Shown piece by piece: positions 619 through 63,388 of a stretch of 64,000 nucleotides of DNA. Position 1 is the first letter of the stretch, and each line of letters opens with the position of its first letter. The position numbers and the translations under genes were made by a program. The DNA lies in the sequence record PV764938.1; one strand, written 5' to 3'. A model generated the notes under the pieces. That model was not told where the DNA came from. It worked only from the letters and a program-made list of their open reading frames with translations, and made no database searches.

Positions 619-1122
619 ATGCTTTTTGTTGCCGACGCCGACTTTGTCCAAAAGACGCAAAGCCAAGATCTTGGAGCTGTTGCCGAACAATTCGATGGCA
701 TTGCGGTGATTGAACGCTGCGATACGTTCGACGATCCCGGCTCATATATCCACTTCATGGATATCCCAGATGAATGGGTGGCACCACGCAAACTGCTGGT
801 GAATCAAACGGGTAACCTCCTCTACAAGCCCTACAACACTGACCATCTCGATGAAGACCTTCTGGCTCAGTATTGGGAGATCAAACAGTACGACATCCAG
901 TTCCGCTACGCTATAATGTCGTACGAACCCTACTTGACTCGTAAGGGCCGATATGCGTTGCAAACGCATATGTGGCAGACTCTGATATTTTTTAATTTTG
1001 ACTCTAGCGCGGACGCCGTGTTAGCAAAATTGAGTACAGACGACCTTAGGAGCATTAGCGTTGAAGACTATCGAAGATTGCTTGGAGAAATTGGACAACC
1101 TTCAGTCCATCTTTCCGTATAA
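619..1122 (+). CDS. hypothetical protein, contains F-x4-DA-x-L-x-KL family motif
   Basis: GGAG RBS, TTGACA at about 583; motif FNFDSSADAVLAKL. Confidence 0.7.
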   Translation: MLFVADADFVQKTQSQDLGAVAEQFDGIAVIERCDTFDDPGSYIHFMDIPDEWVAPRKLLVNQTGNLLYKPYNTDHLDEDLLAQYWEIKQYDIQFRYAIMSYEPYLTRKGRYALQTHMWQTLIFFNFDSSADAVLAKLSTDDLRSISVEDYRRLLGEIGQPSVHLSV

Positions 1123-1729
1123 TCCTCCTCCGGGTTCGATCCATCCCACAAAACTCATTTCACAGTGGGATCAGAAATTCATCTCCGATGTTTCCACGCA
1201 CACGGTTCGTGGTTCCCCTTTGAGTTCCGCGCAAGCCGCGTTGACGCTCAAGATCCTCAACAAATACACGTCACTGTTCTCGGGTAACGATCGCACCAAT
1301 GTTGAGTCCCTGATTAAGCATCCGATTTACCGCCGCGAGCTTTACCAAAGCATTGCAGTGGAACGCGAAGTACGTTGGGCTGGTGGTGCAACTCTGTTGT
1401 TCCGCTGCCAGTACAATGCAATCGTGATGAGTGACCTCAAGTACATTAGTTGTGCGCTGGATACGATCATCGAGAAGCGCATGATCAAGGGCATGAAGAC
1501 TTGGAAAATCGTAGTCGACGATTCCAATTACAAGGAGATCATGAACTTCGTAAAGAAGCACAACTTCGCCTTTGACGATGGTGTGCTCGAATTGTTCATG
1601 CACATCAACAATCACGTCGATGACGAACCTGCAATCCGTGTCGTAGACGGCGAGATCCAAGTAGAAATCAACAATGATGTCCTCTCCACGCTGTGGATTG
1701 AGGAAATGGAATGGCTGCGAAATGTTTGA
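1061..1729 (+). CDS. conserved-type hypothetical protein (TTG start)
   Basis: 222 aa ORF overlapping both neighbours in operon fashion. Confidence 0.65.
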   Translation: MKTIEDCLEKLDNLQSIFPYNPPPGSIHPTKLISQWDQKFISDVSTHTVRGSPLSSAQAALTLKILNKYTSLFSGNDRTNVESLIKHPIYRRELYQSIAVEREVRWAGGATLLFRCQYNAIVMSDLKYISCALDTIIEKRMIKGMKTWKIVVDDSNYKEIMNFVKKHNFAFDDGVLELFMHINNHVDDEPAIRVVDGEIQVEINNDVLSTLWIEEMEWLRNV

Positions 1730-3224
1730 GAGAACTTCATATCCGCTAACCGGCAAGTGGGCCAGGCATCTCCTTCGCTTATCAAATGCTTCAAAGATAC
1801 CCGTAGATGCATCGCTACGCGAAGTAGCGAAACAACGTAGCTACGACGTATCAATGGTTCCTGCGCATCTCAAGTTCTCCCGTAAAGAATACGACGCTAT
1901 CCAATACCTATTGGACTGGAATTGCCGTGCCATCCTGTTGGATCACAAGGGTATCAGCTATTCCCGCCACATCTCGCTGTTGGGTGCGCAACTGTTGGAA
2001 TCCAAGTCCATTGTTGTGTTCTGCCGTGGTCCACGACAAGTGAGTGAATGGGCCGATCTGATTCGTTCCATGTATCCGGATGAACCCATCTTCACGAAGA
2101 TCAACAAGGATCCTCGTCGCAATGTCACCCAGCACGATGCCGACACGGCAAGTCGTCGTTGGATCGTTGGTGAATACCGGGAAATGCAAGACATTGGTAT
2201 GGTGACCGAACACAGCATCGACCACATGATTGTCGAGAAGGACGAAAAGGAACTCCCCTACGATTCCACGGATGTACTCGCGGGTCTTTGCTCGGAAATT
2301 CTCCGGACAACCTTTATCGCACAAAGCGCGGAGTTCTGGGTTGATCAATCCGACTACAAGAGTCAGTCCAGCATTGGCGTGATTCAAATGATCCTCTCGG
2401 AATATTTGAAAACTAATCGGCACATGAGTAAGGTCCCAGTGATGTTTGGAACGTCACAGACCGTTGCCATGTATTTCCGCAAGCGTGGACGCAAATACAA
2501 TCCAGTCTCGCTCTTTGAAGCTTCTGGGACCTGTTTTGATCTAGTCATGGAGAAATCCTCTGTGCATTTCAAAAACAACTTCTCCAATACCATGCTTGTG
2601 AATGAGGGAGCCAATAGCAATCGCCGCAACGAAGGCATCCAACGCTACACGAGTGTTGAAGCAGCCGTTTGTGGACGTGCTGGAGCTTCCGTTGATGAAC
2701 TCGTTGATCGTTCGCTTGAAGGTGATACCCAAGCTCGGGCACACCTTGAGGAACTAAAAACAGTGGATTGGGCAAAGCTCAAAGCCAACATGTTCTACAA
2801 CAATCTGCGCGTGATGAGTTCGGCTGAAGAGAAGGTTGTTATCGTCGCCAAGAACCAAGCCCTGCGCAAGTTCATGAGTTTCTCCACGAATATTGTGTCT
2901 GCGGATCCCGGTGATTCCAACATCGATCAGAAGCTCTCGAATTTCGTATATCCCGCAAATAACAGTTTGGATTTTCCGAATCTCCCCTTGGGATTCAAGA
3001 ACCATATCAGCAACACGATTATGGTCTCCGATTTGATCACATTGGATGTTCGGGCGCTGGAGATTACCGAGCAGGTCATCTTCGCCGAGTTCGATTACGA
3101 TCCTCAGGTTCTGGCCGATTACGTGGAGCTATCCAAGGCATTTGGATTCAAGATCACATTCGGGACGATGCGCGGAACTTTTGAGGAACGACTCGCTGAG
3201 AAGCTCCTGGATCCCTACTACTAA
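1722..3224 (+). CDS. degenerate SNF2/SF2 helicase-like protein
   Basis: RAILLDHKGISYS resembles SNF2 ALLADEMGLGKT; IVVFCR..W and EEKVVIVA resemble later motifs; Walker A Lys absent; start re-assigned to ATG 1722. Confidence 0.5.
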   Translation: MFERTSYPLTGKWARHLLRLSNASKIPVDASLREVAKQRSYDVSMVPAHLKFSRKEYDAIQYLLDWNCRAILLDHKGISYSRHISLLGAQLLESKSIVVFCRGPRQVSEWADLIRSMYPDEPIFTKINKDPRRNVTQHDADTASRRWIVGEYREMQDIGMVTEHSIDHMIVEKDEKELPYDSTDVLAGLCSEILRTTFIAQSAEFWVDQSDYKSQSSIGVIQMILSEYLKTNRHMSKVPVMFGTSQTVAMYFRKRGRKYNPVSLFEASGTCFDLVMEKSSVHFKNNFSNTMLVNEGANSNRRNEGIQRYTSVEAAVCGRAGASVDELVDRSLEGDTQARAHLEELKTVDWAKLKANMFYNNLRVMSSAEEKVVIVAKNQALRKFMSFSTNIVSADPGDSNIDQKLSNFVYPANNSLDFPNLPLGFKNHISNTIMVSDLITLDVRALEITEQVIFAEFDYDPQVLADYVELSKAFGFKITFGTMRGTFEERLAEKLLDPYY

Positions 3225-3344
3225 GTTCAATCAGGAACAGAACAAATTGACTACTGAGGCCTTATTCCTGTAAATTGGGAATAAGGTCGTTTTTTATATA
3301 AACGACGTGACCTGAAACGATAAGTAATAATAAAAAGGTCCATC

Positions 3345-4871
3345 GTGAAAACTTGTAAATTGGTAATCCATGACGAGGTTAATGCCTCGTTCGTAGATCT
3401 CGAACCACGTGTTCGTCGTCTATGCCATGACGCGCTCAAGCACTTCCTGCCACATGCTCGTCATACCCCTGCGTTCAAGTTGGGACGTTGGGACGGCACC
3501 ATTAGTTTGTTTGCCGTAAACGGCAACACCTATGTGAATATGCTGGATCGGGTACTCCCGATCATCATGGAAAACGGGTACGAAATTGAGCTCGAAGATC
3601 TTCGAACTCCACGTACTTTTGAATTCCCGGACATTGATGAAGAATACTGCACGAACTTCATGCCCAATAGTGTTTGGCCAAAAGGTCATCCAGCTGCGGG
3701 CAAGCCGATCATGCTGCGCGACTATCAGGTCGAAATCATCAAGACGTTCATCGACAATCCGCAGTCCATGCAGGAAATTGCAACGGGCGCTGGTAAGACT
3801 TTGCTCACGGCTACACTCAGCCATGTAGTCGAAGCCTATGGTCGTAGTATCATTATTGTTCCAAACAAGTCGCTTGTAGAACAAACTGAGGCCGATTATA
3901 AGAATCTTGGTCTTGATGTTGGTGTCTACTACGGTGACCGCAAGGATATCGGTAAGACTCACACGATTTGTACTTGGCAATCACTTGACCGCATGGCCAA
4001 GGGTACTGCAAGCAAGACAAAGACTAACGCCGTTGACTTCGAAGACTTCATCGAAAACGTTGTTTGCGTGATCATCGACGAAGCGCACCAAGCTAAAGCC
4101 GACGTGTTGAAGAACATGATGGCTGGTGCATTCGCAAACATTCCGATTCGTTGGGGACTCACTGGAACTATTCCGAAGGAAGCACATGCAGCGGATACTA
4201 TCCTGAGTTCAATTGGCCCAGTCGTTAACCGACTCGCAGCCAAGGAACTTATGGATCGCGGCGTTCTCAGCTCGTGCCACGTCGAATGCCTCCAGCTCAT
4301 GGACACGGCAGAATTCGGCAGCTTCCATGAGGAATATGAATTCCTCACAACCGACCGTACAAAGCTTGAATGGCTTGCTGGACTGGTTCAGCAAACACGC
4401 AAGACCGGCAACACTCTGGTTCTAGTGAATCGCGTGGCAACCGGAAAGGAACTCCAGGATATGGTCCCGGATTCCGACTTTATTTCAGGCGGTGTGAAAT
4501 CAGCCGAGCGTAATGAAACCTACTCGGATGCTTCCGAGAAGGACAACATGGCAATCATCGCTACCTATGGTGTTGCGGCGGTTGGCATCAATATCCCACG
4601 AATCTTCAACTTGATTCTCATCGAACCAGGAAAGTCGTTCGTCCGAGTTATTCAGAGTATCGGTCGCGGTATTCGTAAGGCTCAGGACAAGGATTTCGTG
4701 CAGATCTACGACGTCGCAAGCACCTGTAAGTTCTCGGCTGCGCATTTGACGAAGCGCAAGAAGTTCTACAAGGAAGCTCAATACCCATACAAGACCAAAA
4801 AGGTCGACTACCTTCGAGGAGAGATGCTCTCCTACAGTGGAAAAACAACAGATGAAGATTCTAACAGTTGA
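3345..4871 (+). CDS. uvsW: UvsW-like SF2 DNA helicase
   Basis: LRDYQ, ATGAGKT, DEAH, GLTGT, QSIGRGIR motifs; GTG start. Confidence 0.9.
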   Translation: MKTCKLVIHDEVNASFVDLEPRVRRLCHDALKHFLPHARHTPAFKLGRWDGTISLFAVNGNTYVNMLDRVLPIIMENGYEIELEDLRTPRTFEFPDIDEEYCTNFMPNSVWPKGHPAAGKPIMLRDYQVEIIKTFIDNPQSMQEIATGAGKTLLTATLSHVVEAYGRSIIIVPNKSLVEQTEADYKNLGLDVGVYYGDRKDIGKTHTICTWQSLDRMAKGTASKTKTNAVDFEDFIENVVCVIIDEAHQAKADVLKNMMAGAFANIPIRWGLTGTIPKEAHAADTILSSIGPVVNRLAAKELMDRGVLSSCHVECLQLMDTAEFGSFHEEYEFLTTDRTKLEWLAGLVQQTRKTGNTLVLVNRVATGKELQDMVPDSDFISGGVKSAERNETYSDASEKDNMAIIATYGVAAVGINIPRIFNLILIEPGKSFVRVIQSIGRGIRKAQDKDFVQIYDVASTCKFSAAHLTKRKKFYKEAQYPYKTKKVDYLRGEMLSYSGKTTDEDSNS

Positions 4872-5352
4872 TAACAAGCCCTTTTCGATGAACGACGTTC
4901 CCGATGAGGTCGATGATATCAGATATTGCGTACTCGATTACACGGACTCCAACAATGTGGATTACATTTTCATCCCATTGATGTTCTTGGAATCGTTCAA
5001 CAAAAGCGCGGTTGACCTGCGCATCGGAAACTATCGGATTCAAATGCCAAGTGATTGGTCCATCGTAATCGGCGATAAGCATTCGGGTGACCTGGAAGTC
5101 ATCAGCCTAAAGCAGCTTAATGACCGAGAGTTTGATGTATTTGCGATCAACCCGATCAGCGGATATATGCCGGAATTTCTTGACATTGAGATCATGAATG
5201 TGTTTCCTGATGTTAAGTGGTATTTCCCTAAACTCAAGTACGGACACATTCTTGCCGTCCCGTTGAGCCATGAGGAAAAATCCCTTTGTGCGTTCTTTGT
5301 GAAGGACGTCAACAAGATCCCGGAATCCCTTGATATCACACAGATGGTTTGA
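4852..5352 (+). CDS. conserved hypothetical protein downstream of UvsW
   Basis: ORF MKILTVDN... overlapping uvsW end; phage-like codon usage. Confidence 0.75.
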   Translation: MKILTVDNKPFSMNDVPDEVDDIRYCVLDYTDSNNVDYIFIPLMFLESFNKSAVDLRIGNYRIQMPSDWSIVIGDKHSGDLEVISLKQLNDREFDVFAINPISGYMPEFLDIEIMNVFPDVKWYFPKLKYGHILAVPLSHEEKSLCAFFVKDVNKIPESLDITQMV

Positions 5353-5555
5353 TGATACCTATTATTTTTAATCTTGATGATTGGGAAGGCTGGACCGTGG
5401 TACGGAATTACGAACGTAATGTTCACTCCGTACCGCGTAAAGGCGAAATGATCCACTACAAGGATACGCACTTCAAGGTGCGTGAAGTAACATACGACAT
5501 GGACGAAGGTTCGTTCGCCCCTGTCATCAAAGTCTACGCAAAGCAGGGTGACTAA
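5349..5555 (+). CDS. hypothetical protein
   Basis: 68 aa, coupled to neighbours. Confidence 0.6.
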   Translation: MMIPIIFNLDDWEGWTVVRNYERNVHSVPRKGEMIHYKDTHFKVREVTYDMDEGSFAPVIKVYAKQGD

Positions 5556-5830
5556 TGTCAACGCTATACTTGAGTTTGAAATCCGAATATTTTGATGCCA
5601 TTCGCGATGGTACCAAACTCGAGGAATATCGTGAAGTTACCGAATACTGGACCAAGAGAATTGTCGGCCGCGAATACACGGATATCATCCTGACTAAGGG
5701 GTATCCGAAGGCCGATGATTGGTCTCGTCGCATTCGTAAGCCCTGGCGCGGATACACCGTCAAAAAGCTTACCCACCCCTTCTTCGGAAATCAGGAAATA
5801 ACTGTCTTCGCAATTGACGTATCTGGTTGA
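5555..5830 (+). CDS. ASCH/PUA-like domain protein
   Basis: LSLKSEYFDAIRDGTKLEEYRE matches ASCH G-x-K-x-x-E-x-R motif. Confidence 0.75.
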   Translation: MSTLYLSLKSEYFDAIRDGTKLEEYREVTEYWTKRIVGREYTDIILTKGYPKADDWSRRIRKPWRGYTVKKLTHPFFGNQEITVFAIDVSG

Positions 5831-5881
5831 CAACTTTGGTTCCTATGTTATTCTACGGATAACAACAGGAGATCGAAGATG
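5823..5881 (+). promoter_or_regulatory. early sigma70-type promoter plus RBS cassette
   Basis: GGTTGACA-N7-GTTCCTATGTTATTCT ... AGGAGATCGAAGATG; near-identical copy at 35018-35076 on minus strand. Confidence 0.8.
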
Positions 5882-6178
5882 TCGGCTGATATGAACAAGT
5901 TTAACGAAGTGTTCTCTCACCTCAAGGCTGACCCCTACGCGGTCGCTGCTCTCGAGGACATGATCGGTCGCGAATTCGTCTACGATATTCCCGAAGAGCC
6001 CGCAGCACGCGACAAGTTCATCCGCGCAAACGGCACGCTCATCCTCAAAAACAAGTTCAAGATCGTCGGCATTCAGCGCGACTACAAGGGCGACCTCGCT
6101 TACCGCGCGGTTTGCTTGGGCTTCGACGACACTTTCGGTCGTTGCGTTTCTCCGAAAGAAATTCAAATTCTGGAATAA
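5879..6178 (+). CDS. early hypothetical protein
   Basis: Directly follows promoter/RBS cassette. Confidence 0.8.
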   Translation: MSADMNKFNEVFSHLKADPYAVAALEDMIGREFVYDIPEEPAARDKFIRANGTLILKNKFKIVGIQRDYKGDLAYRAVCLGFDDTFGRCVSPKEIQILE

Positions 6179-6180
6179 CT

Positions 6181-8746: not shown

Positions 8747-9052
8747 ATGAATCAGAGGAACCACTTTATGAAGTACCCTTATCGAATTTTCATCAAGTAC
8801 TCAAAGGGCGAAAGCAAGCTCAAGACGATTCAGGAAGTCAATCGATTCCTGAACAACGACATCAAGGGCGAATACCAAAAATACAACATCATCGGCGGTG
8901 AATTTAGAGACCGCCTCGATGGTATCGAGCTTGCTTTTGCAGATCACAAAGACGCAGTTCTTTTCAGACTAGGATTTAATATCGATGGCCAAGAAGTCAC
9001 AGCCAAAACCCACCAGCGATTCGACGCCGGAGAAGAAAAAGAAAGAGTATAA
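8747..9052 (+). CDS. hypothetical protein, F-x4-DA-x-LFKL family
   Basis: LAFADHKDAVLFRLGF. Confidence 0.65.
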   Translation: MNQRNHFMKYPYRIFIKYSKGESKLKTIQEVNRFLNNDIKGEYQKYNIIGGEFRDRLDGIELAFADHKDAVLFRLGFNIDGQEVTAKTHQRFDAGEEKERV

Positions 9053-11115: not shown

Positions 11116-11331
11116 ATGTTCACACATAGCGACGATACCCCGTTAGTCTTCTTTGTCGACGATATGGACGCCGTGATGACTGCGGATATCTTTGAGTGGT
11201 TTGTTCGTCGCAAGCCTGAACATTTTGTTCGCACCCTTTTGAACATGGAGCGAAACGAGTCCGGGCACAAATACGAATTGATCTTCACGCATAAAAAAGA
11301 CGCAATGGAATTCAAGCTTACTTTCCTATGA
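11116..11331 (+). CDS. hypothetical protein, F-x4-DA-x-FKL family
   Basis: ELIFTHKKDAMEFKLTFL; start re-assigned to ATG 11116 after AAGG. Confidence 0.7.
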   Translation: MFTHSDDTPLVFFVDDMDAVMTADIFEWFVRRKPEHFVRTLLNMERNESGHKYELIFTHKKDAMEFKLTFL

Positions 11332-11903
11332 AAAAAGTCACAGACATTGACATCGACTTTGCTGACCGTGATATAGCCCTACAGCACGTTGCCCACACTC
11401 CCGCTAGTTTGATCAAGGATGGCGTTCTCAAGCGCCACAACGTCGGTGTATATCTGCACGACGTGCCCGTGGATCCAATCACAAACTTCTGCTCAATCGA
11501 ATACAAGCGAGCAGAAGAATTGGGTTTCTTCAAGATGGACTTTCTGAATGTTTCCGTGTATAAGGACGTGAAGTCACCGGAGCATTTGGATAAGCTGATG
11601 AACACTCCGCCGATGTGGGAGATTCTCGAGGACGAGTCCATTGTCGATGGCTTGTTCCACTTGGGCGGACATTTCGATGTTGTGTCGAAGATGAAGCCAA
11701 AGTCCGTCATGGAACTCGCAATGGTTCTCGCTCTGATCCGTCCGGCAAAACGGCATCTCGTCGGTAAATCGTGGAGTGAAGTTGAGAAGGATATTTGGAC
11801 AGCAAGCGCGGATGATCTCTATGGGTTCAAAAAGTCCCACGCCGTCTCTTATGCTTTGGTGATTGTTGTGCAGATGAACCTGCTAGTAGAGGGTGCGCTT
11901 TAA
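11328..11903 (+). CDS. dnaE: miniature DNA polymerase III alpha (DnaE) catalytic module
   Basis: TDIDIDF, RHNVGV, FKMDFL, LIRPA, GFKKSHAVSY motifs in 191 aa. Confidence 0.8.
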   Translation: MKKVTDIDIDFADRDIALQHVAHTPASLIKDGVLKRHNVGVYLHDVPVDPITNFCSIEYKRAEELGFFKMDFLNVSVYKDVKSPEHLDKLMNTPPMWEILEDESIVDGLFHLGGHFDVVSKMKPKSVMELAMVLALIRPAKRHLVGKSWSEVEKDIWTASADDLYGFKKSHAVSYALVIVVQMNLLVEGAL

Positions 11904-27302: not shown

Positions 27303-29076
27303 GAAGCATAAAATCGAACGTCTACAGGCTCTGAACGAGTCCGTAAAGGCAACGCAGGTCAAGCTTGCTCGTGCCAAGAAGCTTGAAGAGTCCCTCCGTG
27401 CAACCAACATTGGTGTGCTTCTGGAAGCTGAACTCGAACAAGCTGAAGTAATTCTCGCGGCTAAGGACTTCGTTTCGAAGCTCCAGAAGATGGCCGAAGA
27501 CCTCGCAAACATGCAGGCAGAGTCGATTCCACTTGGTGACTCCATGAAGGAAACACTCGGCCCGGACGCTGCACAGGATTTCGAAAACGCCGTAACCGAC
27601 GCTATCGCACAGGGCCTGGTTGCTGTTCGCGCTGCTAAGGATCAGATCTCTGATTCGATCACTCGCGTTGAAGGTGGTACTCCTGAGGCTTCCGCTGATA
27701 TCGGTTCCGATATGGGCGACTTCGGTGATGATGCTGGCGCTGAGGATCTCGGCGGTGATGATCTTGCTGGTGATCTTGAAGAGCCTGCTGCCGATGTATT
27801 CGGTGGTGCAGAAGCTTCGGCTGGTCCTGCTGAAGAGCCACTTGGTCGTGGTTTCAAGGAATCCTACAAGAGCATTGGTAAGAAGCTGCTTGAGCGTGAA
27901 TCCCTCGATTCGCTCGTTGGTTGGTTGTTCGAGAACATTTCCGCTACAATGCCTGCGGAACAGTTCCCGAAGTTTGCTGGTCAGATCGCAATGAAGGGCG
28001 CACAGGACTCCGAGCGTCTGGCAGGTTGGATCGGCAAGCGCAAGTACGGCAAGGGTCTTAACGCACAGCTTTCGTCCCCACTAGACGATATGGATGCTGA
28101 CATTCTCGATGAAGGTGCTCGTGCAGACCGAAAGACTGTTCAACAGCTCGAAAAAAAGAAAGCTGATGGCAAGAAGCTGAATCCATCGGAAGTTGCCCGT
28201 CTTGACCGTGCCAAGGCTAACACAGAAAAGGAATCCGTAAAGGAAGGCAAGTCCTACCGTTATGACGACGAAGACGGAGATGACGTAGACACCAAGAAGA
28301 AGGCTTCCGCTGAGAAGGGCGCAAAGGCAAAATCCAAGCGTACAATCGAAGAAGCAGTTCGTCTGATCATCGAGCGCAACATTGCACAGACCGGTAAGGG
28401 TCTCGCTGCTCGCGCAATTGCTGAAGCACAAAGCATGTTCCCAATGGTTGAGTCCACAAGCGAGTCGATCGTTGAAGCGTTCACTGCTGAATTCGGTATG
28501 TCCCCGCAGGCTTACTCCGTAAAGAAGGCAAAGGCTGTTGCTGAGGCACAGACTCTGAACCCGCAGGACAAGAAGAATGCAGCCGCTGTAATGAGCAAGG
28601 TTGCTGGTGAAATGGCAACAGATAAGGCACTGGACAAGAAGGGCGTTGACTCTGCAATGTCCAAGTTGGACCCGAAGGAGCGTTCTACAGCTCAGAAGGT
28701 AATCAACAACGCAAAGTCCCAGGGCAAGACTGTTCAGAAGGTTGGCGATCTGGTTTCCGCAACAAAGGATGAACTCGAAGAGAACATCAACGCTGCTAAC
28801 TGGCCAATCAACAGCATGGGTCAGTACAAGGGCGACGCGTTCTCGACCGACTATAACAAGCTGAAGCCAAACAAAACTTCGACGGATTCGGCTCAGGTCT
28901 CGGATACTCCAAAGGCTGCTGATGCTCCAAAGTCCGATACTCCGTGGGATGGCAGCAATAAGGCCCCTGCAGAGTCTCCAAAGACATCCGATGGTGCAAC
29001 AGCAAGCAACAAGCCTGCTAAGCCTTCCCAGGATGGTGCTACAAAGTCCGAAGGTTCTGAAGAAGAAAAGGACTAA
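27295..29076 (+). CDS. prohead core/scaffold-like coiled-coil protein
   Basis: LLEAELEQAEVILAAKDFV..LQKMAEDL; acidic linker; multiple LxE/IxE sites. Confidence 0.55.
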   Translation: MNKKHKIERLQALNESVKATQVKLARAKKLEESLRATNIGVLLEAELEQAEVILAAKDFVSKLQKMAEDLANMQAESIPLGDSMKETLGPDAAQDFENAVTDAIAQGLVAVRAAKDQISDSITRVEGGTPEASADIGSDMGDFGDDAGAEDLGGDDLAGDLEEPAADVFGGAEASAGPAEEPLGRGFKESYKSIGKKLLERESLDSLVGWLFENISATMPAEQFPKFAGQIAMKGAQDSERLAGWIGKRKYGKGLNAQLSSPLDDMDADILDEGARADRKTVQQLEKKKADGKKLNPSEVARLDRAKANTEKESVKEGKSYRYDDEDGDDVDTKKKASAEKGAKAKSKRTIEEAVRLIIERNIAQTGKGLAARAIAEAQSMFPMVESTSESIVEAFTAEFGMSPQAYSVKKAKAVAEAQTLNPQDKKNAAAVMSKVAGEMATDKALDKKGVDSAMSKLDPKERSTAQKVINNAKSQGKTVQKVGDLVSATKDELEENINAANWPINSMGQYKGDAFSTDYNKLKPNKTSTDSAQVSDTPKAADAPKSDTPWDGSNKAPAESPKTSDGATASNKPAKPSQDGATKSEGSEEEKD

Positions 29077-37797: not shown

Positions 37798-38262
37798 ATG
37801 ATAATGAATCCGTTTTTGCTACCTGAGAAAGATCGTATGCTTTCCTGGAGAGAGCTTCGTAACCAAATCTCTGCACTTCCCGATGATGAAAAGTTTGAAC
37901 CACTTCTGCGTTGGTGGGCAAAGGCTCCTATTTGTGCCTACGCAATCGATGCCTACGATTGCTCGCAGTGGCCAACACCTTGGGAACTCTTGAATGAGAA
38001 TATGTTCTGCACAAGTGCGATTGCATACTTGATGGCGCAGACACTCATCTTGGGCGGCGTGAACGAAAACCGTATCATTCTCTCTTGCATCAAGAGCAAT
38101 GACGACGAACGACTCATTGTCATTGTCGACGACAGCATCGTACTAAACTATTCGTATGGTGAAGTTTTCGCTTGGAGCGATATCAAGGACGAATTCGTAG
38201 AACGCCAGTCCTACCGTTTCTCCGACGCCAAGGCAATTCCGATTAGCCGTACCGCAGCTTAA
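37798..38262 (+). CDS. transglutaminase/papain-like fold protein (putative)
   Basis: WPTPWELL...FCTSAIAYLMAQTL Cys-helix pattern. Confidence 0.45.
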   Translation: MIMNPFLLPEKDRMLSWRELRNQISALPDDEKFEPLLRWWAKAPICAYAIDAYDCSQWPTPWELLNENMFCTSAIAYLMAQTLILGGVNENRIILSCIKSNDDERLIVIVDDSIVLNYSYGEVFAWSDIKDEFVERQSYRFSDAKAIPISRTAA

Positions 38263-38476
38263 ACAGAACAGCTTCTGCGGGGTCTTCGAACCAGAAATCC
38301 CGCAGAAGTTTGTAATGATTGCCTGTGAGTTCGTTTTGGCAGTAATCAATTGCAGCGCGGTATTCCGCACTGAACTCACTCATCACAGGAGTGTCACGTA
38401 GCTCCACTCGCACCCATAGTTCAGCACCTTTTGCTAATTTGAAGATTGTCTCGGGTACGGGTTTGTTCTCGCGCAT
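38243..38476 (-). CDS. F-x4-DA-x-LFKL family protein
   Basis: FWFEDPAEAVLFKLRYG. Confidence 0.7.
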   Translation of the reverse strand: MRENKPVPETIFKLAKGAELWVRVELRDTPVMSEFSAEYRAAIDYCQNELTGNHYKLLRDFWFEDPAEAVLFKLRYG

Positions 38477-38496: not shown

Positions 38497-38754
38497 TCAA
38501 AGAAAACGCAATTTGTAGAGCATCGCGTCGCGTGCTTCTTCAAACCAATAACCGGGCCTACTGGTGCGATCAACGCAGAATCGACCTGCCGATTCTACGC
38601 GAACAAACTCATGCACTTGAGTACGGTGTTCAAGCCGTTCGCGTAGCTCGTACATTTCGGAGTAATCGACTGCTGGTACGAAATGCCAAGTCGCTCGATA
38701 GCCATTGCTGGCGAAAGTCTCTGGAAGGATTTGTTTAGTTGGAAAGTCAGTCAT
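38497..38754 (-). CDS. F-x4-DA-x-LFKL family protein
   Basis: YWFEEARDAMLYKLRFL. Confidence 0.7.
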   Translation of the reverse strand: MTDFPTKQILPETFASNGYRATWHFVPAVDYSEMYELRERLEHRTQVHEFVRVESAGRFCVDRTSRPGYWFEEARDAMLYKLRFL

Positions 38755-38893
38755 CTGCGTCTTTGCGTTCTAGTTCCCGTTTGCGCTTTGCCATCTTGTA
38801 GGCAAAGTCTTCGGCTTGCTCCAGAAGACGTTCGGTTTCGGAACGTTCAATTTGTTCGAGCTCTTGCTTCTTGTGCGGGAACCAGTGACGCAT
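38747..38893 (-). CDS. 48-aa charged peptide MRHWFPHKKQELEQ...
   Basis: Translated by hand; GAGGT RBS; overlaps next start. Confidence 0.6.
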   Translation of the reverse strand: MRHWFPHKKQELEQIERSETERLLEQAEDFAYKMAKRKRELERKDADD

Positions 38894-38942: not shown

Positions 38943-39185
38943 TCAACCAAAAGCCAGCTTAAACAGCATGGCATCCTGCCGCTTTTCGAAACAAACGTAG
39001 GTGTTGAAATTCTTGCTGTGGTAGCAACCCTTGGCGTTTTCATGGCACCAGATCAGGGCATCTTCCTCATACCGCATAAGTTCGTCCCAGGTCTTCCAAT
39101 AGTCTTGGGAAGCCATACGGATGACATGCCAACGCAGGTAGTACCCTTTGTCCAAATACTCTTCATATAGAACGTGACGGTCCAT
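38943..39185 (-). CDS. F-x4-DA-x-LFKL family protein (tandem paralogue)
   Basis: YLRW...VCFEKRQDAMLFKLAFG. Confidence 0.75.
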   Translation of the reverse strand: MDRHVLYEEYLDKGYYLRWHVIRMASQDYWKTWDELMRYEEDALIWCHENAKGCYHSKNFNTYVCFEKRQDAMLFKLAFG

Positions 39186-39499
39186 TAGGTGAAAGCCAGT
39201 TTGAACAACATTGCGTCTTGACGTTCTTCAAAGCACACGAACGCCCAATGTTTGGTAGAGAATCGGCCCTTGCAGTTCTCGCATAGCCACTCAATCATCT
39301 CGTCCTCGAACTCATAGTATTCGAGACCGTCGGCCCATATTGGCTTGGCATCGACTCGAATGGGAAGCCAACGCAGGTACAATCCCTCCGTGTAGTATCG
39401 ATAATAATCGACAAACTTGGGATCGCCGACTGTCATCATTGCGGCCTTCTCCTCCTGCTGTATCTTATATTCGAGTAGAATAGTCATTAGATGACTCAT
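39185..39499 (-). CDS. F-x4-DA-x-LFKL family protein (tandem paralogue)
   Basis: YLRW...VCFEERQDAMLFKLAFT. Confidence 0.75.
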   Translation of the reverse strand: MSHLMTILLEYKIQQEEKAAMMTVGDPKFVDYYRYYTEGLYLRWLPIRVDAKPIWADGLEYYEFEDEMIEWLCENCKGRFSTKHWAFVCFEERQDAMLFKLAFT

Positions 39500-39527: not shown

Positions 39528-39551
39528 AAAAAACCGGCCGAAGCCGGTTTT
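39528..39551 (-). terminator. tmRNA terminator
   Basis: AAAACCGGC-TTCG-GCCGGTTTTTT on minus strand (UUCG loop). Confidence 0.85.
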
Positions 39552-43279: not shown

Positions 43280-43512
43280 CAGACGAACAAACAATCGAAG
43301 AAGCTCTCGTGGATTTCGATCCGCAAGTCGTGGCCGTGCTTGTTGAGCAAAGCCAGGGCAAGTATCACAAGATCCTGCTCTCACAAGATGACGCTGGCAC
43401 GGCGTTCTTCCGTGAGACAACAAACTTTGTCGATGATGAATCCGATGAGCCGGTAATCTTCGGACCATTCGCTGATGCAGCTTCGGCACTTTGGGGTATT
43501 AGCTTGCTCTAA
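43270..43512 (+). CDS. hypothetical protein
   Basis: Start re-assigned to ATG 43270. Confidence 0.6.
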   Translation: MSVTDEQTIEEALVDFDPQVVAVLVEQSQGKYHKILLSQDDAGTAFFRETTNFVDDESDEPVIFGPFADAASALWGISLL

Positions 43513-43934
43513 TGGATGACTCCTACAAAAGCGTGTTCTTCAGAATTCGTGATCGTGGTGGAGTTATTCACCACGAATGGACCGGCCAAGATCACAGCGA
43601 GTCACGCCCCTATATGAGGGTGTATAAGCTTAACGGATACAACCTGAATTTGTCATTACCCGGAAGCTGTGACCATATGGTCGCATTCGAAGTTCCTGAT
43701 TATGACGCTTTCGTGATGCGACGATATTCATATGTGGAGTTCGTCAAATACACCACAATGTTCGCGGATACCGCATGGCCCGTCTGGGGTTGTTTTCCGA
43801 CTTGTGATGACCGTTGTCACGATATTCACCTGGGCTTTGTGTTTAGGAGCCAAACCGATGCTGCGGTATTCAAATTGGCGTGTGAATTTCCTACTCATGT
43901 CATCGACTTTCCCACGGAATTCATCAACGAATAA
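43512..43934 (+). CDS. F-x4-DA-x-LFKL family protein
   Basis: FVFRSQTDAAVFKLAC. Confidence 0.65.
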   Translation: MDDSYKSVFFRIRDRGGVIHHEWTGQDHSESRPYMRVYKLNGYNLNLSLPGSCDHMVAFEVPDYDAFVMRRYSYVEFVKYTTMFADTAWPVWGCFPTCDDRCHDIHLGFVFRSQTDAAVFKLACEFPTHVIDFPTEFINE

Positions 43935-57902: not shown

Positions 57903-57953
57903 TGTTGACAAAGTTGGTTCCTGTGTTAGAGTCGGTACAAATAGGAGATCGCG
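57903..57953 (+). promoter_or_regulatory. early promoter plus RBS cassette
   Basis: TTGACAAAGTTGGTTCCTGTGTTA...AGGAGATCGCGATG. Confidence 0.75.
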
Positions 57954-59522
57954 ATGGACTTTCTGCGTAACAAGAACTTGATCAAACTGGTCGGCCACTT
58001 CGAGAAGATGGGTTATCAAATCCGTGTCGTTGGTGGTGCTGTTCGTGATGCTCTGCAGAAACTCCCCTGCAAGGATATCGATCTCTGCACTGACGCCGAT
58101 CCCAACGAAATGATGGAACTGGCCGAGAAATTCTCGCTGCATGTGGTTCCAACAGGCCTGCAACACGGCACCGTAACGTTCGTGATCAACGGCGAGCCCT
58201 TCGAAGTGACAACCCTGCGTGTGGACGTCGAGACAGATGGTCGGCACGCACAGGTCGAATACACTCGCAGCTTCACAAAGGACGCTTTCCGCCGTGACCT
58301 GACCATCAACGCGATGTCGATGGACATGAACGGCAACGTCTACGACTATTTCTGTGGTCGCGAAGACCTGCGTAAGAATCGTGTTCGGTTTGTCGGTGAG
58401 GCACGCGATCGTGTCCGTGAGGATTACCTGCGTGTTCTGCGTTGGTTCCGCTTTGCAGCACGGATGAAGCAGTTTCCCGAGTATAGGACAATTGAATCCG
58501 AACTGCGCCTGTTCGGCGAAGCTGACACACTGAATGGTCTGGCCAATATCAGCGGTGAACGTATCTGGTCCGAACTGAAGAAGATCTTGGTCGCTCCGAA
58601 TGGTCGCAAGGCTATCGAGTATATGATGTCCACACACGTCTTCAACAGCATCTCGACGGACAAGGCCAAGTTCCGTTCGCAGGGCATTGGGGCGTTTTCG
58701 GTTCAGATCCTGATCGAAGCCTACAACGCACAGAACGACTACAGTGATGACTTCGCCGATATGAAGGAAGCGATGGTCATGGCAAGCCTGGCTGTGCTGG
58801 TCGGTGTGCATCAGGCAGATCAAGTCATCGAACGCTTGAAGTTCTCCACCAAGGAACGCAAGTATTTCGAGTTTATGGTTCGTTGGATCGAACTGGCCGT
58901 GTTCCAGAAGAAGTCACTGGGCCAGCTGGAGTCTTGGTTCTATTTCAGGACTTCTGAAGGCGCTGATCCACAATTGCTGATGGCTGCGGTCAAGATCGCA
59001 GAAATCAACGCGCGGATGGATGGTTCGATTCTGAAGAACATCATGACCGACGATGGTAAAGTGAAATTCAGCCAAGACCAGGCACCGTTCCCAGTTTCCG
59101 GAAAGGATTTGGCAGAACGTGGCGTTAGACCGGGACCCGCAATGGGTCACCTGCTGAAGGCCATGCGCTTGGATTGGGCTTTGCAACCGCATCCCGCTGT
59201 AGCTACGAAAAAGATGCTGCTGGATAACGTTCTGGGCCAGTTCTCGGATCCTTCTGAAATCTATGCGATGAAGGTTCCGGTGGTTAAGGTCGACGAGTTC
59301 TTTCAGGATCACCTGGACTACATGGTGCATCACGATATGACCGGTGAGACCGTAAAAGTGTTGAATCTGATGCAGGATCTGTTCGAAGCAGAGTCTGAGT
59401 TCCACTATGTGGATTTCGACATGGACCCAGACGGTGACCAACACTTCCTGGCTTTCTTCAAGAGCAAGGATTCTGCAATGATTGCAAAGCTGCGGGAGGG
59501 TGCATTTGCCTCTGCCCGATGA
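57954..59522 (+). CDS. cca: class II tRNA nucleotidyltransferase (CCA-adding enzyme) with C-terminal extension
   Basis: VGGAVRD, DIDL, RRDLTINAM, EDYLRVLRWFRFA, SGERIWSEL. Confidence 0.88.
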   Translation: MDFLRNKNLIKLVGHFEKMGYQIRVVGGAVRDALQKLPCKDIDLCTDADPNEMMELAEKFSLHVVPTGLQHGTVTFVINGEPFEVTTLRVDVETDGRHAQVEYTRSFTKDAFRRDLTINAMSMDMNGNVYDYFCGREDLRKNRVRFVGEARDRVREDYLRVLRWFRFAARMKQFPEYRTIESELRLFGEADTLNGLANISGERIWSELKKILVAPNGRKAIEYMMSTHVFNSISTDKAKFRSQGIGAFSVQILIEAYNAQNDYSDDFADMKEAMVMASLAVLVGVHQADQVIERLKFSTKERKYFEFMVRWIELAVFQKKSLGQLESWFYFRTSEGADPQLLMAAVKIAEINARMDGSILKNIMTDDGKVKFSQDQAPFPVSGKDLAERGVRPGPAMGHLLKAMRLDWALQPHPAVATKKMLLDNVLGQFSDPSEIYAMKVPVVKVDEFFQDHLDYMVHHDMTGETVKVLNLMQDLFEAESEFHYVDFDMDPDGDQHFLAFFKSKDSAMIAKLREGAFASAR

Positions 59523-59763
59523 AGGATCCTGGCTCGGCCGGATTGAAGTCCCTGAAGGTCGTGATGATATCATTACCATTACGACCTACTTCGACCGAAC
59601 CGATGGCTACTATACGCGCAAGAAAATTGCGACATCCAAAGCCGTGCTGGATTGGTGTGCCGAAAACAATATCGCGATAAACGATCTGTTTCCGTTGTTC
59701 CCGCGCACCCTGTATTTCAAAACGACACAGGATGCTATGCTGTTCAAGTTGAGGTGGCTATGA
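59506..59763 (+). CDS. F-x4-DA-x-LFKL family protein
   Basis: LYFKTTQDAMLFKLRWL; probable TTG start after GGAGG. Confidence 0.7.
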   Translation: MPLPDEGSWLGRIEVPEGRDDIITITTYFDRTDGYYTRKKIATSKAVLDWCAENNIAINDLFPLFPRTLYFKTTQDAMLFKLRWL

Positions 59764-60101
59764 CTCTCGTTTACGTGGGTAAAGACGACGGAGATTCCCA
59801 TGTTATCCGTATCGAGTCAACTGCTTTGATGAACCGCCTCTATATGTGGAATCAAATCAAGTTGGGCACAATGGATGGATTCAATCGAATCTGGCCATGG
59901 GATCCTGCGTTTCGAATGCACCGGTGGATTCAGCCGGAATTCAAGGAGTGGCTGGAAAAGCACGCGACTACCGACGAGGGAATGCCGCTGTATTCGATAC
60001 GCTGGCGCGAATGTGAAGTCGCCGGATACTTCCGCAAGTATCTTCACATTCATTTCTATCGTGAGCGGAGCGCGGCAATATTCAGGTTGACCTACTCATG
60101 A
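59760..60101 (+). CDS. F-x4-DA-x-LFKL family protein
   Basis: IHFYRERSAAIFRLTYS; ATGA overlap. Confidence 0.7.
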   Translation: MTLVYVGKDDGDSHVIRIESTALMNRLYMWNQIKLGTMDGFNRIWPWDPAFRMHRWIQPEFKEWLEKHATTDEGMPLYSIRWRECEVAGYFRKYLHIHFYRERSAAIFRLTYS

Positions 60102-60349
60102 TCCAATATGTACTCGAGGACGAAGAGAAACGCGATGGTCTAGTTGATGAGGACTGGGGTATCGTTGACATCAAGTGCTATGGTGGTTCGCCCGTCGAGA
60201 TCAACGGAACACGCTGGAATCTCAAACAAGAGGTTGAAGACTGGCTTGAATCCGATATTATCGGCCAGTACGAGTATGAAGTAGAGTCAAGCGTCCTCAA
60301 GTTCAAATCACCCGATGACGCGATGTTGTTCAAGTTGACCTGGTTATGA
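60098..60349 (+). CDS. F-x4-DA-x-LFKL family protein
   Basis: LKFKSPDDAMLFKLTWL; ATGA overlap. Confidence 0.75.
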   Translation: MIQYVLEDEEKRDGLVDEDWGIVDIKCYGGSPVEINGTRWNLKQEVEDWLESDIIGQYEYEVESSVLKFKSPDDAMLFKLTWL

Positions 60350-60678
60350 GAGTATTCTCCAACGCGCACCAAGCTATTATGCGGCTTGGTGGTGACGAAA
60401 TCGACAAGGTGCTAAATGTTGACTGGGATTCCGTCAACAGCATCACGACTTGGAAATTGGTCCAGCGTGCGCGGCAAATGGAGACGATCCTATCGGCTAC
60501 CGATTTCAAACCCGACGTGAAGACATGGCTCGAAACAAGCCTCGGCCCATATGGTGACCAATACCATTTGAATTGGAAAGCCGTCGCAAGCAATGCAAAT
60601 TGGGACATTAAAGTCACCTGCGACTTGCATTTCGAGAATACCAAATACGCGGCACTCTTTAGGTTAACCTGGCTATGA
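60346..60678 (+). CDS. F-x4-DA-x-LFKL family protein
   Basis: LHFENTKYAALFRLTWL; ATGA overlap. Confidence 0.75.
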   Translation: MRVFSNAHQAIMRLGGDEIDKVLNVDWDSVNSITTWKLVQRARQMETILSATDFKPDVKTWLETSLGPYGDQYHLNWKAVASNANWDIKVTCDLHFENTKYAALFRLTWL

Positions 60679-60992
60679 TTGCAATCCCATTGGAAACTGT
60701 CGACCAGATGGAGAAGCTATTCAAATTGGATGAATGGCGAGAGCAGGTGGGCCGTGCATTGTTGTTCAGCGGATTATCAGAGATGAAGATCCTAGCGACG
60801 ATGGAAGCCTTGGATCTTACTGATACTGCTCGCGATTTCCTCTACGAGCATGATCTCTATTATCCGAGACAATTTCGGTTCGAGTGGGAATGCACTGAAA
60901 TCCAAGCAGAACCAGAAAATCGGTTCGACGTCCGGGGCAAATTCTTCTTACCCGAGGAATATGCGGTTTTGTTCAAACTGGCTATTCTGTGA
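60675..60992 (+). CDS. F-x4-DA-x-LFKL family protein
   Basis: FFLPEEYAVLFKLAIL; ATGA overlap. Confidence 0.7.
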   Translation: MIAIPLETVDQMEKLFKLDEWREQVGRALLFSGLSEMKILATMEALDLTDTARDFLYEHDLYYPRQFRFEWECTEIQAEPENRFDVRGKFFLPEEYAVLFKLAIL

Positions 60993-61042
60993 GTTGACAT
61001 TCCTGATTCCTATGTTAGTATGCGACTAACAAAGGATAGGTT

Positions 61043-61877: not shown

Positions 61878-62209
61878 GCTCCGCCGTCATTTTGTTTCTT
61901 AATTTTTCGGACTCTGGGATGCAACGAGGCCCATGTCTCAAACTCCTGAGATATCTGGCCACTCTTTCCCGTAATGTGCTGGACTTTCTTAATCCCTAAA
62001 TAGAATGCTTGTTCAAGATGATCACTGCTCGCTTCATAAGCTTGTTGAATCGTGTAGTTGTGAAGATCCAATACAGGCGAAAACGATATATCCTGAACCT
62101 GAGGACGAGTCGCGCGAGTTGGCAACGGAATACTTTCAGATAGGTTGAGCTTCACCCCTTTGGTGAAGTCGTCCCAAAGCTTCCTCTCTGTATCCGTAAG
62201 CTCACGCAT
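61850..62209 (-). CDS. Smr-domain endonuclease (SmrA/SmrB-like)
   Basis: N-terminal MRELTDTERKLW, LDLH, ITGK, DGGAWLLWL. Confidence 0.85.
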   Translation of the reverse strand: MRELTDTERKLWDDFTKGVKLNLSESIPLPTRATRPQVQDISFSPVLDLHNYTIQQAYEASSDHLEQAFYLGIKKVQHITGKSGQISQEFETWASLHPRVRKIKKQNDGGAWLLWLKRK

Positions 62210-62297
62210 TTCTATTTTGACTCTACTTGTCTGAACCAGCTATATTTTGACTTAACAGGACACGACGTTGTCTGTCAATTTTTACAGGAGAAATCTT

Positions 62298-62741
62298 ATG
62301 TACGTTTCCACCAAGACCTATGGCCACGATATCGGACTGAGCTGTGCTTTTCGTCAATGGCGCGCCGAATCGCATTGCCGATTCATTCACGGCTACGCGC
62401 TGAAGGTCCACCTGGAATTTGAAGCTGACGAACTGGACGCCCGTAACTGGGTTGTTGATTTCGGTTCGCTCAAGAGCTTCAAGAAGATGCTTGAAGACAC
62501 TTTCGACCACAAGCTATTGGTGGCCGAGGATGATCCGGAGCTTGAAACACTTATGGACCTTCATGCAAAGGGTCTGGCTGATGTTGTAGTTCTTCCGAAG
62601 GCTGGCTGTGAGGCTTTTGCCGAATACGTCTTTGGTGCTGCTGAGACGTGGCTACAGTCGAATGGATACACTCCGCGCGTTCGTATGCGCCGCGTGGAAG
62701 TTTCCGAACACGGCGCAAACTCTGCGCAATTTGTTGCTTAA
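62298..62741 (+). CDS. queD: 6-carboxy-5,6,7,8-tetrahydropterin synthase (QueD/PTPS)
   Basis: HCRFIHGY, VDFGSLK, FDHK, VSEHGAN; AGGAG RBS before ATG 62298. Confidence 0.9.
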   Translation: MYVSTKTYGHDIGLSCAFRQWRAESHCRFIHGYALKVHLEFEADELDARNWVVDFGSLKSFKKMLEDTFDHKLLVAEDDPELETLMDLHAKGLADVVVLPKAGCEAFAEYVFGAAETWLQSNGYTPRVRMRRVEVSEHGANSAQFVA

Positions 62742-63388
62742 TTTCGGTCTTCGACTTCAGCAACCTGGTCCGCAAACATTAGCTTGAGGACCAGGACTTC
62801 GTTTAGCTTGTCCACGTAAACGAATGTATCTCGGACAACACCTTCCGGATGTCTTTCATCCACGCTATTCGAATATTTCTTGCAGACTAACTTGTGATGA
62901 ACGCCGAGCTCAGTTAGGGCTTTGGCGTTCTCATCGTCTGTGCCCCAGTTACGGTTGCGCATTTTCACACGGAAACGGAACTCTCCGTAGAACTTACCCT
63001 TATCGTTGTTTTGACGTGGCAAAGGCTTGCCCCAGTGCGCGGGATTTGTCTGACGCACACTGTTGACGAAGAAACGGCTGTTGTGGGTCTCAATCCAACG
63101 CAAAACCGCGGGATCGTTCCCGTAGACGTAGAAGTCGTAGGTTGCCTTCACACTGACAAGGTGCGCACCCAATGGATCCAGCGCATCATGAAGAACCTGC
63201 TTGAGTTCATCAAAGTGATGCCACGATTCCAAGCTTGGACTCAGCGCGACACGGAACGCATACTTGGCGAAGAACTTGGGCCTATGGAGCATTTCAGACG
63301 CCTCGGCATCCAAGATTGCGTTGTCAACAAGACGCGCAATTGCTCGCTCCATTCTCTGCTCATAAGTCCACGCCATGGCATGCTCCAA
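62738..63388 (-). CDS. hypothetical protein, divergent F-x4-DA-x-LFKL family
   Basis: VYVDKLNEVLVLKLMF near C-terminus. Confidence 0.65.
   Translation of the reverse strand: MEHAMAWTYEQRMERAIARLVDNAILDAEASEMLHRPKFFAKYAFRVALSPSLESWHHFDELKQVLHDALDPLGAHLVSVKATYDFYVYGNDPAVLRWIETHNSRFFVNSVRQTNPAHWGKPLPRQNNDKGKFYGEFRFRVKMRNRNWGTDDENAKALTELGVHHKLVCKKYSNSVDERHPEGVVRDTFVYVDKLNEVLVLKLMFADQVAEVEDRN

Follow-up and report, generated by a model that had tools for sequence, protein, structure and literature searches.

Why does a single phage genome encode dozens of small, divergent proteins that share one ending? The question is raised by a window of 64,000 nucleotides (nt), bases 310001-374000 of Sinorhizobium phage Phosso (PV764938.1, 469,473 bp; host S. 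meliloti), to which the part of the window that was compared is 100% identical. In this window, an earlier note had pointed out about 15 small paralogues with a common C-terminal motif, and had proposed that they form an interaction array, possibly with RNA-related targets. All of the open reading frames (ORFs) under study carry the label 'hypothetical protein' in the GenBank record. The number proved to be far too low. Across the genome of Phosso, an iterated profile (E<1e-3) found 53 members. They are grouped in 20 clusters and make up about 8% of the protein genes, and other large phages have the family as well. The best explanation at present, with a probability of roughly 0.45, is that a conserved scaffold with varied surfaces has been diversified into a set of binders, probably early accessory proteins, each for different host or phage targets.

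The evidence for a family starts with the motif. Its loose form occurs 11 times in the six-frame translation of the window, versus a mean of 0.4 (maximum 3) in 50 shuffled sequences, and the form with just 1-3 residues between the motif and a stop codon occurs nine times versus 0.12 in shuffles. An alignment of 12 of the ORFs contains a conserved helix, a turn with Gly and an aromatic residue, a strand with Phe at its end and a final helix, and a profile of the last ~47 residues sets these 12 apart from all else in the window. In a leave-one-out test, in which the profile was made of the other 52 Phosso members and E was scaled to 5849 ORFs, 11 of the 12 were found at E=3e-14 to 1.7e-3, ORF 60675 being marginal (E=0.28). 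An external-only profile, built from metagenomic proteins none of which is close to any Phosso ORF, recovers nine of the 12 at E<0.01 (43512, 59760 and 60675 are missed) and 45 ORFs in Phosso as a whole. Both profiles match significantly across about 47-87 positions and thus beyond the motif alone. Together with the structural model described below, these results bear out the proposal that the ORFs are genuine paralogues, built on one small alpha/beta module and highly diverged in their N-terminal parts, for 12 of the 15 sequences named (11 significantly, 60675 marginally). The other three, ORF 619, ORF 62738 and the C-terminus of the CCA-adding enzyme, reach only E ~1 or worse with the ~47-residue profile and were not retained. 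In further comparisons ORF 619 gave a profile E of about 0.6-2 and an hhalign probability of 30% over 26 columns, and ORF 62738 a profile E above 6 and an hhalign probability of 0.3%. Outside the two arrays that are treated further below, the ORFs concerned are, in amino acids (aa):

8768-9052, plus strand: family member, 94 aa, with a 26-residue tail beyond the module (leave-one-out E=3.8e-5; external-only E=1.9e-6)
11116-11331, plus strand: family member, 71 aa (leave-one-out E=8.3e-7; external-only E=7.8e-4)
43512-43934, plus strand: family member, 140 aa, extended at the N-terminal side and bearing an 18-residue tail (leave-one-out E=2.6e-5)
619-1122, plus strand: ORF named in the earlier note, unsupported as a member by profile and hhalign
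62738-63376, minus strand: ORF named there as weak, not a member, unsupported by profile and hhalign

The largest clusters in Phosso comprise 13 members (5.6-14.0 kb), eight members (95.3-100.3 kb), the five members downstream of the cca gene and the four below the transfer-messenger RNA (tmRNA) gene. The copies are old: the median pairwise identity of the module among the 53 members is 26% and the maximum is 59%; the nearest paralogue lies within 6 kb for only nine of the 53. Three more Phosso ORFs (record positions 28096-28488, 32635-33003 and, on the minus strand, 228865-229209) have weak BLASTP matches to metagenomic modules (E 0.002-0.01) and may be additional, very divergent copies.

What is kept among these divergent copies is a small set of positions. 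Among the 53 members, the long helix contains a Trp in 83% and ends with Asn in 47%, the turn has a Gly in 51% and the last strand ends with Phe in 96%; in the last helix, Ala is found in 85%, Phe in 96%, Lys or Arg in 100%, Leu in 94% and an aromatic residue in 92%. The conserved positions are thus mostly aromatic or aliphatic, or likely helix-capping, plus one that is always basic, and judging from residue type and helix periodicity they look like core positions that hold the fold. A metal site in the helix was considered and rejected, as Cys, although the most frequent residue, reaches only 40% of the members at one position and 20% at the other. The copies differ in their N-terminal part, in the lengths of their loops and in net charge. 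The isoelectric points range from 4.1 to 9.9 (two truncated entries set aside), and 21 of the 53 members are acidic and 20 basic.

The member at 38943 was modelled with AlphaFold2 and an alignment of 81 family sequences; it is the single member that was modelled in this way. The model is a confident single domain (predicted local distance difference test score, pLDDT, 93.4; predicted template modelling score 0.82) with a short N-terminal helix, a strand (residues 19-22), a helix (32-49), two strands (54-58 and 62-65) and a final helix (68-78). The core is therefore a strand-helix-strand-strand-helix of three strands and two main helices, and the model agrees with the column shares that a helix and a terminal strand-helix are kept, as the earlier note had observed. 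Its tentative assignment to a ferredoxin-like or RNA-recognition-motif (RRM)-like fold fared less well. Those sandwiches also combine helices with a small sheet and share the first three core elements, strand-helix-strand, but they continue as strand-helix-strand-strand-helix-strand with a four-stranded sheet, whereas the family model has three strands and lacks the last one. Foldseek found nothing in the PDB at E<=0.001 (best E=0.88, template modelling (TM) score at most 0.42); the non-significant list contains secretin and ring-building domains, DCoH and NusG. In BFVD, it retrieved proteins from uncultured Caudovirales phages as well as three proteins of Agrobacterium phage Atu_ph07, the best being A0A915VGP9 (E=5.5e-4, TM-score 0.70). 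With TM-scores of 0.53-0.70, these proteins share the predicted fold and are most likely family members, and the structure predictions thus yield one fold for the modelled protein and its probable relatives instead of unrelated folds. None of the BFVD proteins is named or has a known function, and therefore they add to the distribution of the family and not to its mechanism.

The sequence libraries were equally silent on a known domain. Pfam-A revealed no recurring family among the 81 members or among the longer members, PHROGs v4 gave no match at 1e-3 save one to a major-head-protein PHROG, NCBIfam 20 gave none, and the best profile match to PDB sequences had E=0.3. The T4 late-transcription coactivator gp33 (PF16805, Trans_coact; phrog_254) was tried as a relative and rejected. 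Like the family members it is a small phage protein, but only member 59506 resembles it, at chance level (E=0.053, 13.8 bits versus a cut-off of 25), as one of ten members and again as the single one, at the same E, among the 81 scanned.

How far the family extends beyond Phosso was addressed with a profile search of 1.84 billion cluster representatives, which retrieved 206 proteins at E<=0.001. The best 150 of these 206 are all small, with a median of 85 aa and the shortest at 52-66 aa, and several external proteins consist of two modules in tandem. The chain ends at most three residues after the Phe-Lys/Arg-Leu triplet in 100 of the 150 external proteins and in 29 of the 53 Phosso members. 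None of the external proteins that were looked up has a name other than 'hypothetical protein'. Most of the contexts examined are phage-like, with genes for DNA polymerase B, ligase, topoisomerase II, ClpX, ParB-like or queuosine-related proteins, or long same-strand runs of tiny genes; three short contigs are without any such phage marker. All but two of the loci examined hold several members, mostly arranged in tandem, and the G+C content of the contigs ranges from 32% to 50%. The contigs with the family include L014, a compost-metagenome contig that is syntenic with 29-49 kb of the window; L016, from IMG/VR; and four further ones:

L018 (32% G+C), 18.2 kb: 25 members
L016, 20.1 kb: 16 members
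L031, 4.3 kb: seven members
L014, 20.2 kb: five members
L012, 15.6 kb: four members
L032, 1.4 kb: three members

One protein of L012 (2445-2789, plus strand) combines putative repeats, which by eye resemble the MORN type, with the C-terminal module of the family.

Among the collected phages, the nearest isolate is Atu_ph07, by a helicase identity of 60%; farther kin are PA5oct-like phages and jumbo phages of Vibrio, Xanthomonas and Escherichia. Atu_ph07 was likewise scanned whole, and it contains about six weak, degenerate members versus 53 in Phosso, which suggests that the expansion is lineage-specific. The gap between the two topoisomerase II subunit genes gives the clearest example. It holds no gene in Atu_ph07 (2699-5885), four small genes in Phosso, of which two are members and one is a weak candidate (record 375689-379975 = L010:2689-6975), and 13 member ORFs in L016 (5015-12642). 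The comparison indicates that the gap is a fixed slot that has filled up with family genes.

Simpler searches yielded little. A tblastn search of the GenBank phages with two window members and one metagenomic member gave nothing outside Phosso, and therefore BLAST-level searches miss the family. A word-indexed protein search with the family alignment retrieved only four proteins, and a pattern scan of IMG/VR led to two confirmed stretches among 240 candidates, the confirmation having used the first sequence alone. Motif strings searched in the literature gave nothing, and the available passages of the papers on Atu_ph07 and AP-J-162 do not mention, under the terms used, a paralogous or duplicated gene family. 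The sequence comparisons thus define a family of undescribed single-domain proteins of about 60-110 residues that has so far been seen in large phages and metagenomes.

The organization of the genes is best seen downstream of cca. The comparison here is with L030, a 4.2-kb contig from another relative of Phosso, which spans cca, the five members and the polynucleotide kinase gene in the same order. Identities of the orthologues and ratios of nonsynonymous to synonymous substitution rates (dN/dS) are given with the features:

57905-57932, plus strand: sigma-70-like promoter with an extended -10 element by consensus, 22 nt upstream of cca, conserved in L030
57954-59522, plus strand: CCA-adding enzyme, 522 aa (Pfam PolyA_pol E=2.6e-30); 54% identical between Phosso and L030
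59506-59763, plus strand: family member, 85 aa, whose TTG start codon lies within cca (17-nt overlap; leave-one-out E=2.2e-9); orthologue 81% identical, dN/dS 0.12
59760-60101, plus strand: family member, 113 aa, in ATGA overlap with the preceding gene (leave-one-out E=1.7e-3); orthologue 87% identical, dN/dS 0.12
60098-60349, plus strand: family member, 83 aa, ATGA overlap (leave-one-out E=6e-11); orthologue 92% identical, dN/dS 0.04
60346-60678, plus strand: family member, 110 aa, ATGA overlap (leave-one-out E=2.3e-6); orthologue just 35% identical
60675-60992, plus strand: probable divergent family member, 105 aa, ATGA overlap (leave-one-out E=0.28); orthologue 55% identical, dN/dS 0.26
60994-61021, plus strand: second copy of the promoter by consensus, upstream of the polynucleotide kinase gene, marking the end of the cca unit, conserved in L030

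Five coupled copies below cca had been claimed, and this holds: there are five members and four ATGA junctions, and the first gene overlaps cca itself. The last ORF, marginal by profile, keeps the terminal Phe-Lys-Leu, lies inside the array and has a conserved position in L030. As promoter copies stand before cca and before the kinase gene, cca and the five members can be regarded as one unit. At three junctions (59746-59763, 60332-60349 and 60661-60678), the codons for Lys-Leu-Arg/Thr-Trp produce a purine-rich stretch, for example GAGGTGG, a few bases before the next ATG; since it precedes the ATG in this way, the end of one array gene may serve as the ribosome-binding site of the next.

The promoters belong to a class that is characterized by TTGAC(A/T), about 10 nt, a conserved pyrimidine-rich spacer, an extended -10 element and TANNNT. 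In the window, TTGACA followed by a spacer of 15-18 nt and TANNNT occurs nine times versus 1.9 in shuffles, and seven of the nine share the conserved spacer and the extended -10 element (5827, 6185, 22454 on the minus strand, 33796 on the minus strand, 35072 on the minus strand, 57905 and 60994). Defined more widely, the class counts 27 copies in the whole Phosso record, and others of these precede arrays at record positions 6639, 12112 and, on the minus strand, 113936. The class is conserved in both L030 and L014. By analogy with T4-type phages, such promoters would be used for early transcription by the host polymerase.

The second array lies below the tmRNA gene, on the minus strand, and was compared with L014:

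39553-40242, minus strand: permuted two-piece tmRNA gene of the alphaproteobacterial type with a long intervening segment, not of the family (Rfam RF01849 108 bits, RF04321 113 bits)
39530-39551, minus strand: terminator-like hairpin followed by a T run, between the tmRNA 3' end and the first family gene (nine-pair stem with five G-C pairs; consensus match only)
39185-39487, minus strand: family member, 100 aa, first gene below the tmRNA, with a longer ORF that extends to 39499 (leave-one-out E=3e-14); module 54% identical to that of its neighbour 38943, no clear orthologue in L014
38943-39185, minus strand: family member, 80 aa, the protein modelled (leave-one-out E=1.9e-13); orthologue 84% identical, dN/dS 0.09
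38747-38893, minus strand: 48-aa ORF, not a member, that interrupts the array; kept in L014 with 62% identity
38497-38754, minus strand: family member, 85 aa (leave-one-out E=8.6e-5; external-only E=1.3e-11); orthologue 60% identical, dN/dS 0.11
38243-38476, minus strand: family member, 77 aa, last of the four (leave-one-out E=1.6e-8); orthologue 73% identical, dN/dS 0.17

The tmRNA gene was missed by ARAGORN, and the GenBank record of Phosso annotates nothing at this position. Four copies had been described as lying directly downstream of the tmRNA. Four members do lie there; the 48-aa ORF interrupts them, and the hairpin separates them from the tmRNA.

The orthologous pairs indicate how the copies have been maintained. 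The family orthologues in L014, which include one of member 43512 (71% identical; this member also has a weak counterpart in Atu_ph07), are 60-84% identical with dN/dS values of 0.09-0.17, the neighbouring genes having 0.05-0.31. Taking both contigs together, orthologues are 35-92% identical with dN/dS values of 0.04-0.26, similar to those of neighbouring genes; the ratios are rough because dS is near or above 1. These values show purifying selection on the individual copies.

A coherent scheme for these observations can be formulated as follows. The family expands by gene gain at fixed slots between core genes, the new copies line up in same-strand, translationally coupled arrays, and purifying selection then maintains each of them. 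The host polymerase would transcribe at least some of the arrays from the conserved sigma-70-like promoters, and the products would act as stoichiometric binders, with the variable surface of each copy recognizing a different host or phage macromolecule. If the copies bind different macromolecules in this way, they would be accessory proteins of host takeover or counter-defence. The analysis establishes homology, copy number, the arrangement in arrays, the predicted fold, purifying selection and the lack of the family in known libraries; early expression, binding and the kind of target are inferred. The interaction array that the earlier note had proposed thus stays the best reading in this form; its extension to RNA-related targets does not, as detailed below.

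Several points weigh against this scheme. None of the members has a known partner, ligand or phenotype, and the timing of expression is read solely from the promoter consensus; moreover, the four-gene array below the tmRNA was not seen to be preceded by a promoter of the conserved class. The burial of the conserved residues was deduced from residue type and helix periodicity, and the invariant Lys or Arg could be a shared functional site instead of a structural contact. Finally, purifying selection combined with deep divergence, with no pair of modules above 59% identity, is unlike a fast arms race within the lineage.

The proposed role has precedents in part. Large virulent phages carry blocks of small early genes for host takeover, such as the early region of T4 and the terminal-region genes of SPO1. 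Like the Phosso arrays, these blocks consist of short same-strand genes with tight stop/start overlaps and strong sigma-70-type promoters, and they lie between core genes. However, they are mostly made of unrelated genes, whereas one fold supplies the arrays of Phosso, for which early timing is an inference. Another parallel is found in Bacillus phage G, where a zinc-ribbon domain has undergone a lineage-specific expansion to about 35 copies, as stated in the passages searched of a jumbo-phage survey (PMC7824862), which do not mention the Phosso family. In both cases a small domain is present in tens of copies in one jumbo phage, and for the zinc ribbon, too, the function is unknown and binding has been proposed. 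The Phosso family differs in having another fold, no conserved metal ligands, 53 copies and arrays also on other phage contigs.

Irrespective of the targets, one family that is absent from the libraries, and whose predicted fold is unmatched by solved structures, accounts for about 8% of the genes in a phage of 469 kb and for much of the small-gene regions of other large phage contigs. Naming it would turn hundreds of 'hypothetical proteins' into one tractable problem and provide a new profile for phage annotation. The copies are a natural series of diversified proteins on a single scaffold, suited to structural and expression studies of the dealings of large phages with their hosts, and the different copy numbers at one fixed slot (none, few, 13) show how jumbo-phage genomes grow.

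The first alternative is that the family works with RNA or the translation apparatus, its members being small partners or regulators of tRNA-repair or translation enzymes, or RNA-binding proteins. The placement of the arrays, one below the tmRNA and the other between cca and the polynucleotide kinase gene, suggests this possibility. In addition, a member comes immediately after the threonyl-tRNA synthetase gene and after two of the three genes for peptidyl-tRNA hydrolase. Of the members at these loci (record 176653-177305, 281210-282336 and 402686-405685), two are unusually long (237 and 336 aa), with N-terminal parts that have no Pfam match. When adjacency was assessed with placements confined to the small-gene part of the genome, five clusters adjoined genes for translation or RNA-repair proteins (18 genes) versus 1.6 expected (P about 0.01), but this gene list was drawn up after the data had been seen. 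No excess was present beside tRNA and tmRNA genes, for which five clusters compare with 4.2 expected; the 735 features of the Phosso record include 62 that ARAGORN recovered as tRNA genes. Both gene sets combined gave ten adjacent clusters versus 5.1 expected (P about 0.007, again with the post hoc list of protein genes), and a simpler distance test was borderline, with eight members within 500 bp and a 95th percentile of the null distribution of eight. Thus, placement beside RNA genes, which had been taken as a hint of RNA-related targets, is not supported as a pointer to the role, and what is left of the idea is the modest excess beside protein genes.

The distribution and the proteins themselves also speak largely against an RNA link. 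The region of 400-450 kb, with 45 of the RNA genes found, contains a single member, the tmRNA is the only Rfam-known RNA in the window, and a terminator-like hairpin stands between it and its array; in L016, the arrays lie between topoisomerase genes. One position of the last helix is always basic, as might suit RNA binding, but 21 of the 53 members are acidic, and Foldseek yielded no significant match to a solved structure, with a few RNA-related entries at E above 1. Neighbourhoods of tRNA-repair genes would equally suit a counter-defence role.

A further argument for the RNA link comes from a tail of the CCA enzyme that is peculiar to this lineage and is most like the strand-helix of the family in its best-kept stretch. 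This tail (residues 426-522, window 59229-59519, ~97 residues) is lineage-specific, found only in Phosso and the L030 relative; among the matches listed, the alignment of other phage CCA enzymes reaches no further than residue 426, and the enzyme of Atu_ph07 has 421 aa. It is 37% identical between Phosso and L030, and the family-like stretch has Ala in place of the Phe of the family. The claim that it is a family member was not upheld, as profile comparisons (E about 0.5-10, and hence at least 0.5) and profile-profile comparisons (hhalign, 18-23%) were not significant. A word-indexed protein search with the tail found nothing beyond the enzyme itself. A single-sequence model has a similar order of elements at low confidence (pLDDT 50.9); a search of BFVD with this poor model, which gave no family match, was uninformative. 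A degenerate relative of the family is possible, to judge from the sequence. On balance, an involvement with RNA or translation appears rather unlikely.

Instead of different binding surfaces around a common core, the common part itself might be the binding site. In this case the C-terminal strand-helix would dock onto one shared hub, such as the phage Clp protease and chaperones or RNA polymerase, the variable part would pick the cargo, and the array would be a set of adaptors. The last helix is the most conserved stretch, it stands at the very C-terminus in the 29 Phosso and 100 external members counted above, and it includes the invariant Lys or Arg; in addition, Phosso and Atu_ph07 encode ClpP, ClpX, ClpS and further Clp-type ATPases, and a clpX gene adjoins the array of L016. 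However, the last helix of the model is no free tail but an integral part of the fold, packed against the sheet, a separate cargo domain would not fit into the shortest members (52-66 aa), and Atu_ph07 has the Clp genes yet only about six weak members. Docking onto a single hub is therefore regarded as distinctly unlikely.

Two ideas start from the capsid protein. One, which may be described as a 'bait on a scaffold', is that the small domain, stable and conserved, displays variable peptide segments, some of which are copies of parts of essential phage proteins, for instance the major capsid protein. As a library of decoys or adaptors, the array would intercept host immune sensors or redirect host machines, and its copy number would expand at fixed slots as hosts change. 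This is considered improbable. The other, more restricted to the capsid and even less probable, is that members assist in head assembly or its regulation, or act as decoys by presenting parts of the major capsid protein to host systems that sense it. It is prompted by the Phosso gene '170' (record 113923-114303 = L005:15926-16303, minus strand, 126 aa), which matches Pfam Gp23 (PF07068, E=9e-6, 25.8 bits versus a cut-off of 24.4) and also residues 336-376 of the capsid protein of Phosso itself (BLASTP E=6e-7). The Gp23 match is limited to profile positions 306-354 of 376, which makes the gene product a carrier of a fragment and not a capsid protein. The metagenomic members P0035 and P0076 match a different capsid segment, residues ~198-220 (E=4e-5 for P0035); altogether, two of the 81 members match Gp23 in Pfam and one the major-head-protein PHROG. 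Against this, a capsid-like stretch occurs in only three members out of about 250 that were examined, none of the remaining 52 Phosso members matches the capsid protein with its N-terminal part, and the family genes lie outside the structural gene blocks. That N-terminal parts are copied from other phage genes as a general rule was also considered and rejected, as two of the 53 give any match, one of them to the capsid protein.

The remaining view, that the arrays are selfish or neutral duplicated cassettes without individual function or that the shared ending is a convergent short motif, takes account of the widely differing copy numbers among related phages and of the replaced position in the tmRNA array of L014, but it fits poorly and is highly improbable, given profile matches that are significant over about 47-87 positions and not the motif alone, one confident fold predicted for a whole protein, dN/dS values of 0.04-0.26 with gene order kept in relatives, and no repeats, endonuclease or other mobility genes inside the arrays according to the annotation.

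Two minor observations concern neighbouring genes. Member 11116 is directly upstream of a small ORF that contains a piece of DNA polymerase III alpha according to Pfam, and this ORF is one of two small ones annotated as 'DnaE-like' (window 11328-11903, plus strand, and record 97210-97743 = L004:48210-48743), each directly 3' of family members. Both have only fragments of DNA polymerase III alpha, one a palm/nucleoside triphosphatase piece (E=5e-12) and the other a weak finger-domain piece, and the replicase of Phosso itself is a family-B polymerase. Elsewhere in the genome, a tRNA gene annotated in GenBank (record 446731-446806 = L011:24731-24806) has the anticodon CTA and the label tRNA-Pyl; if functional, it would read the amber stop codon.

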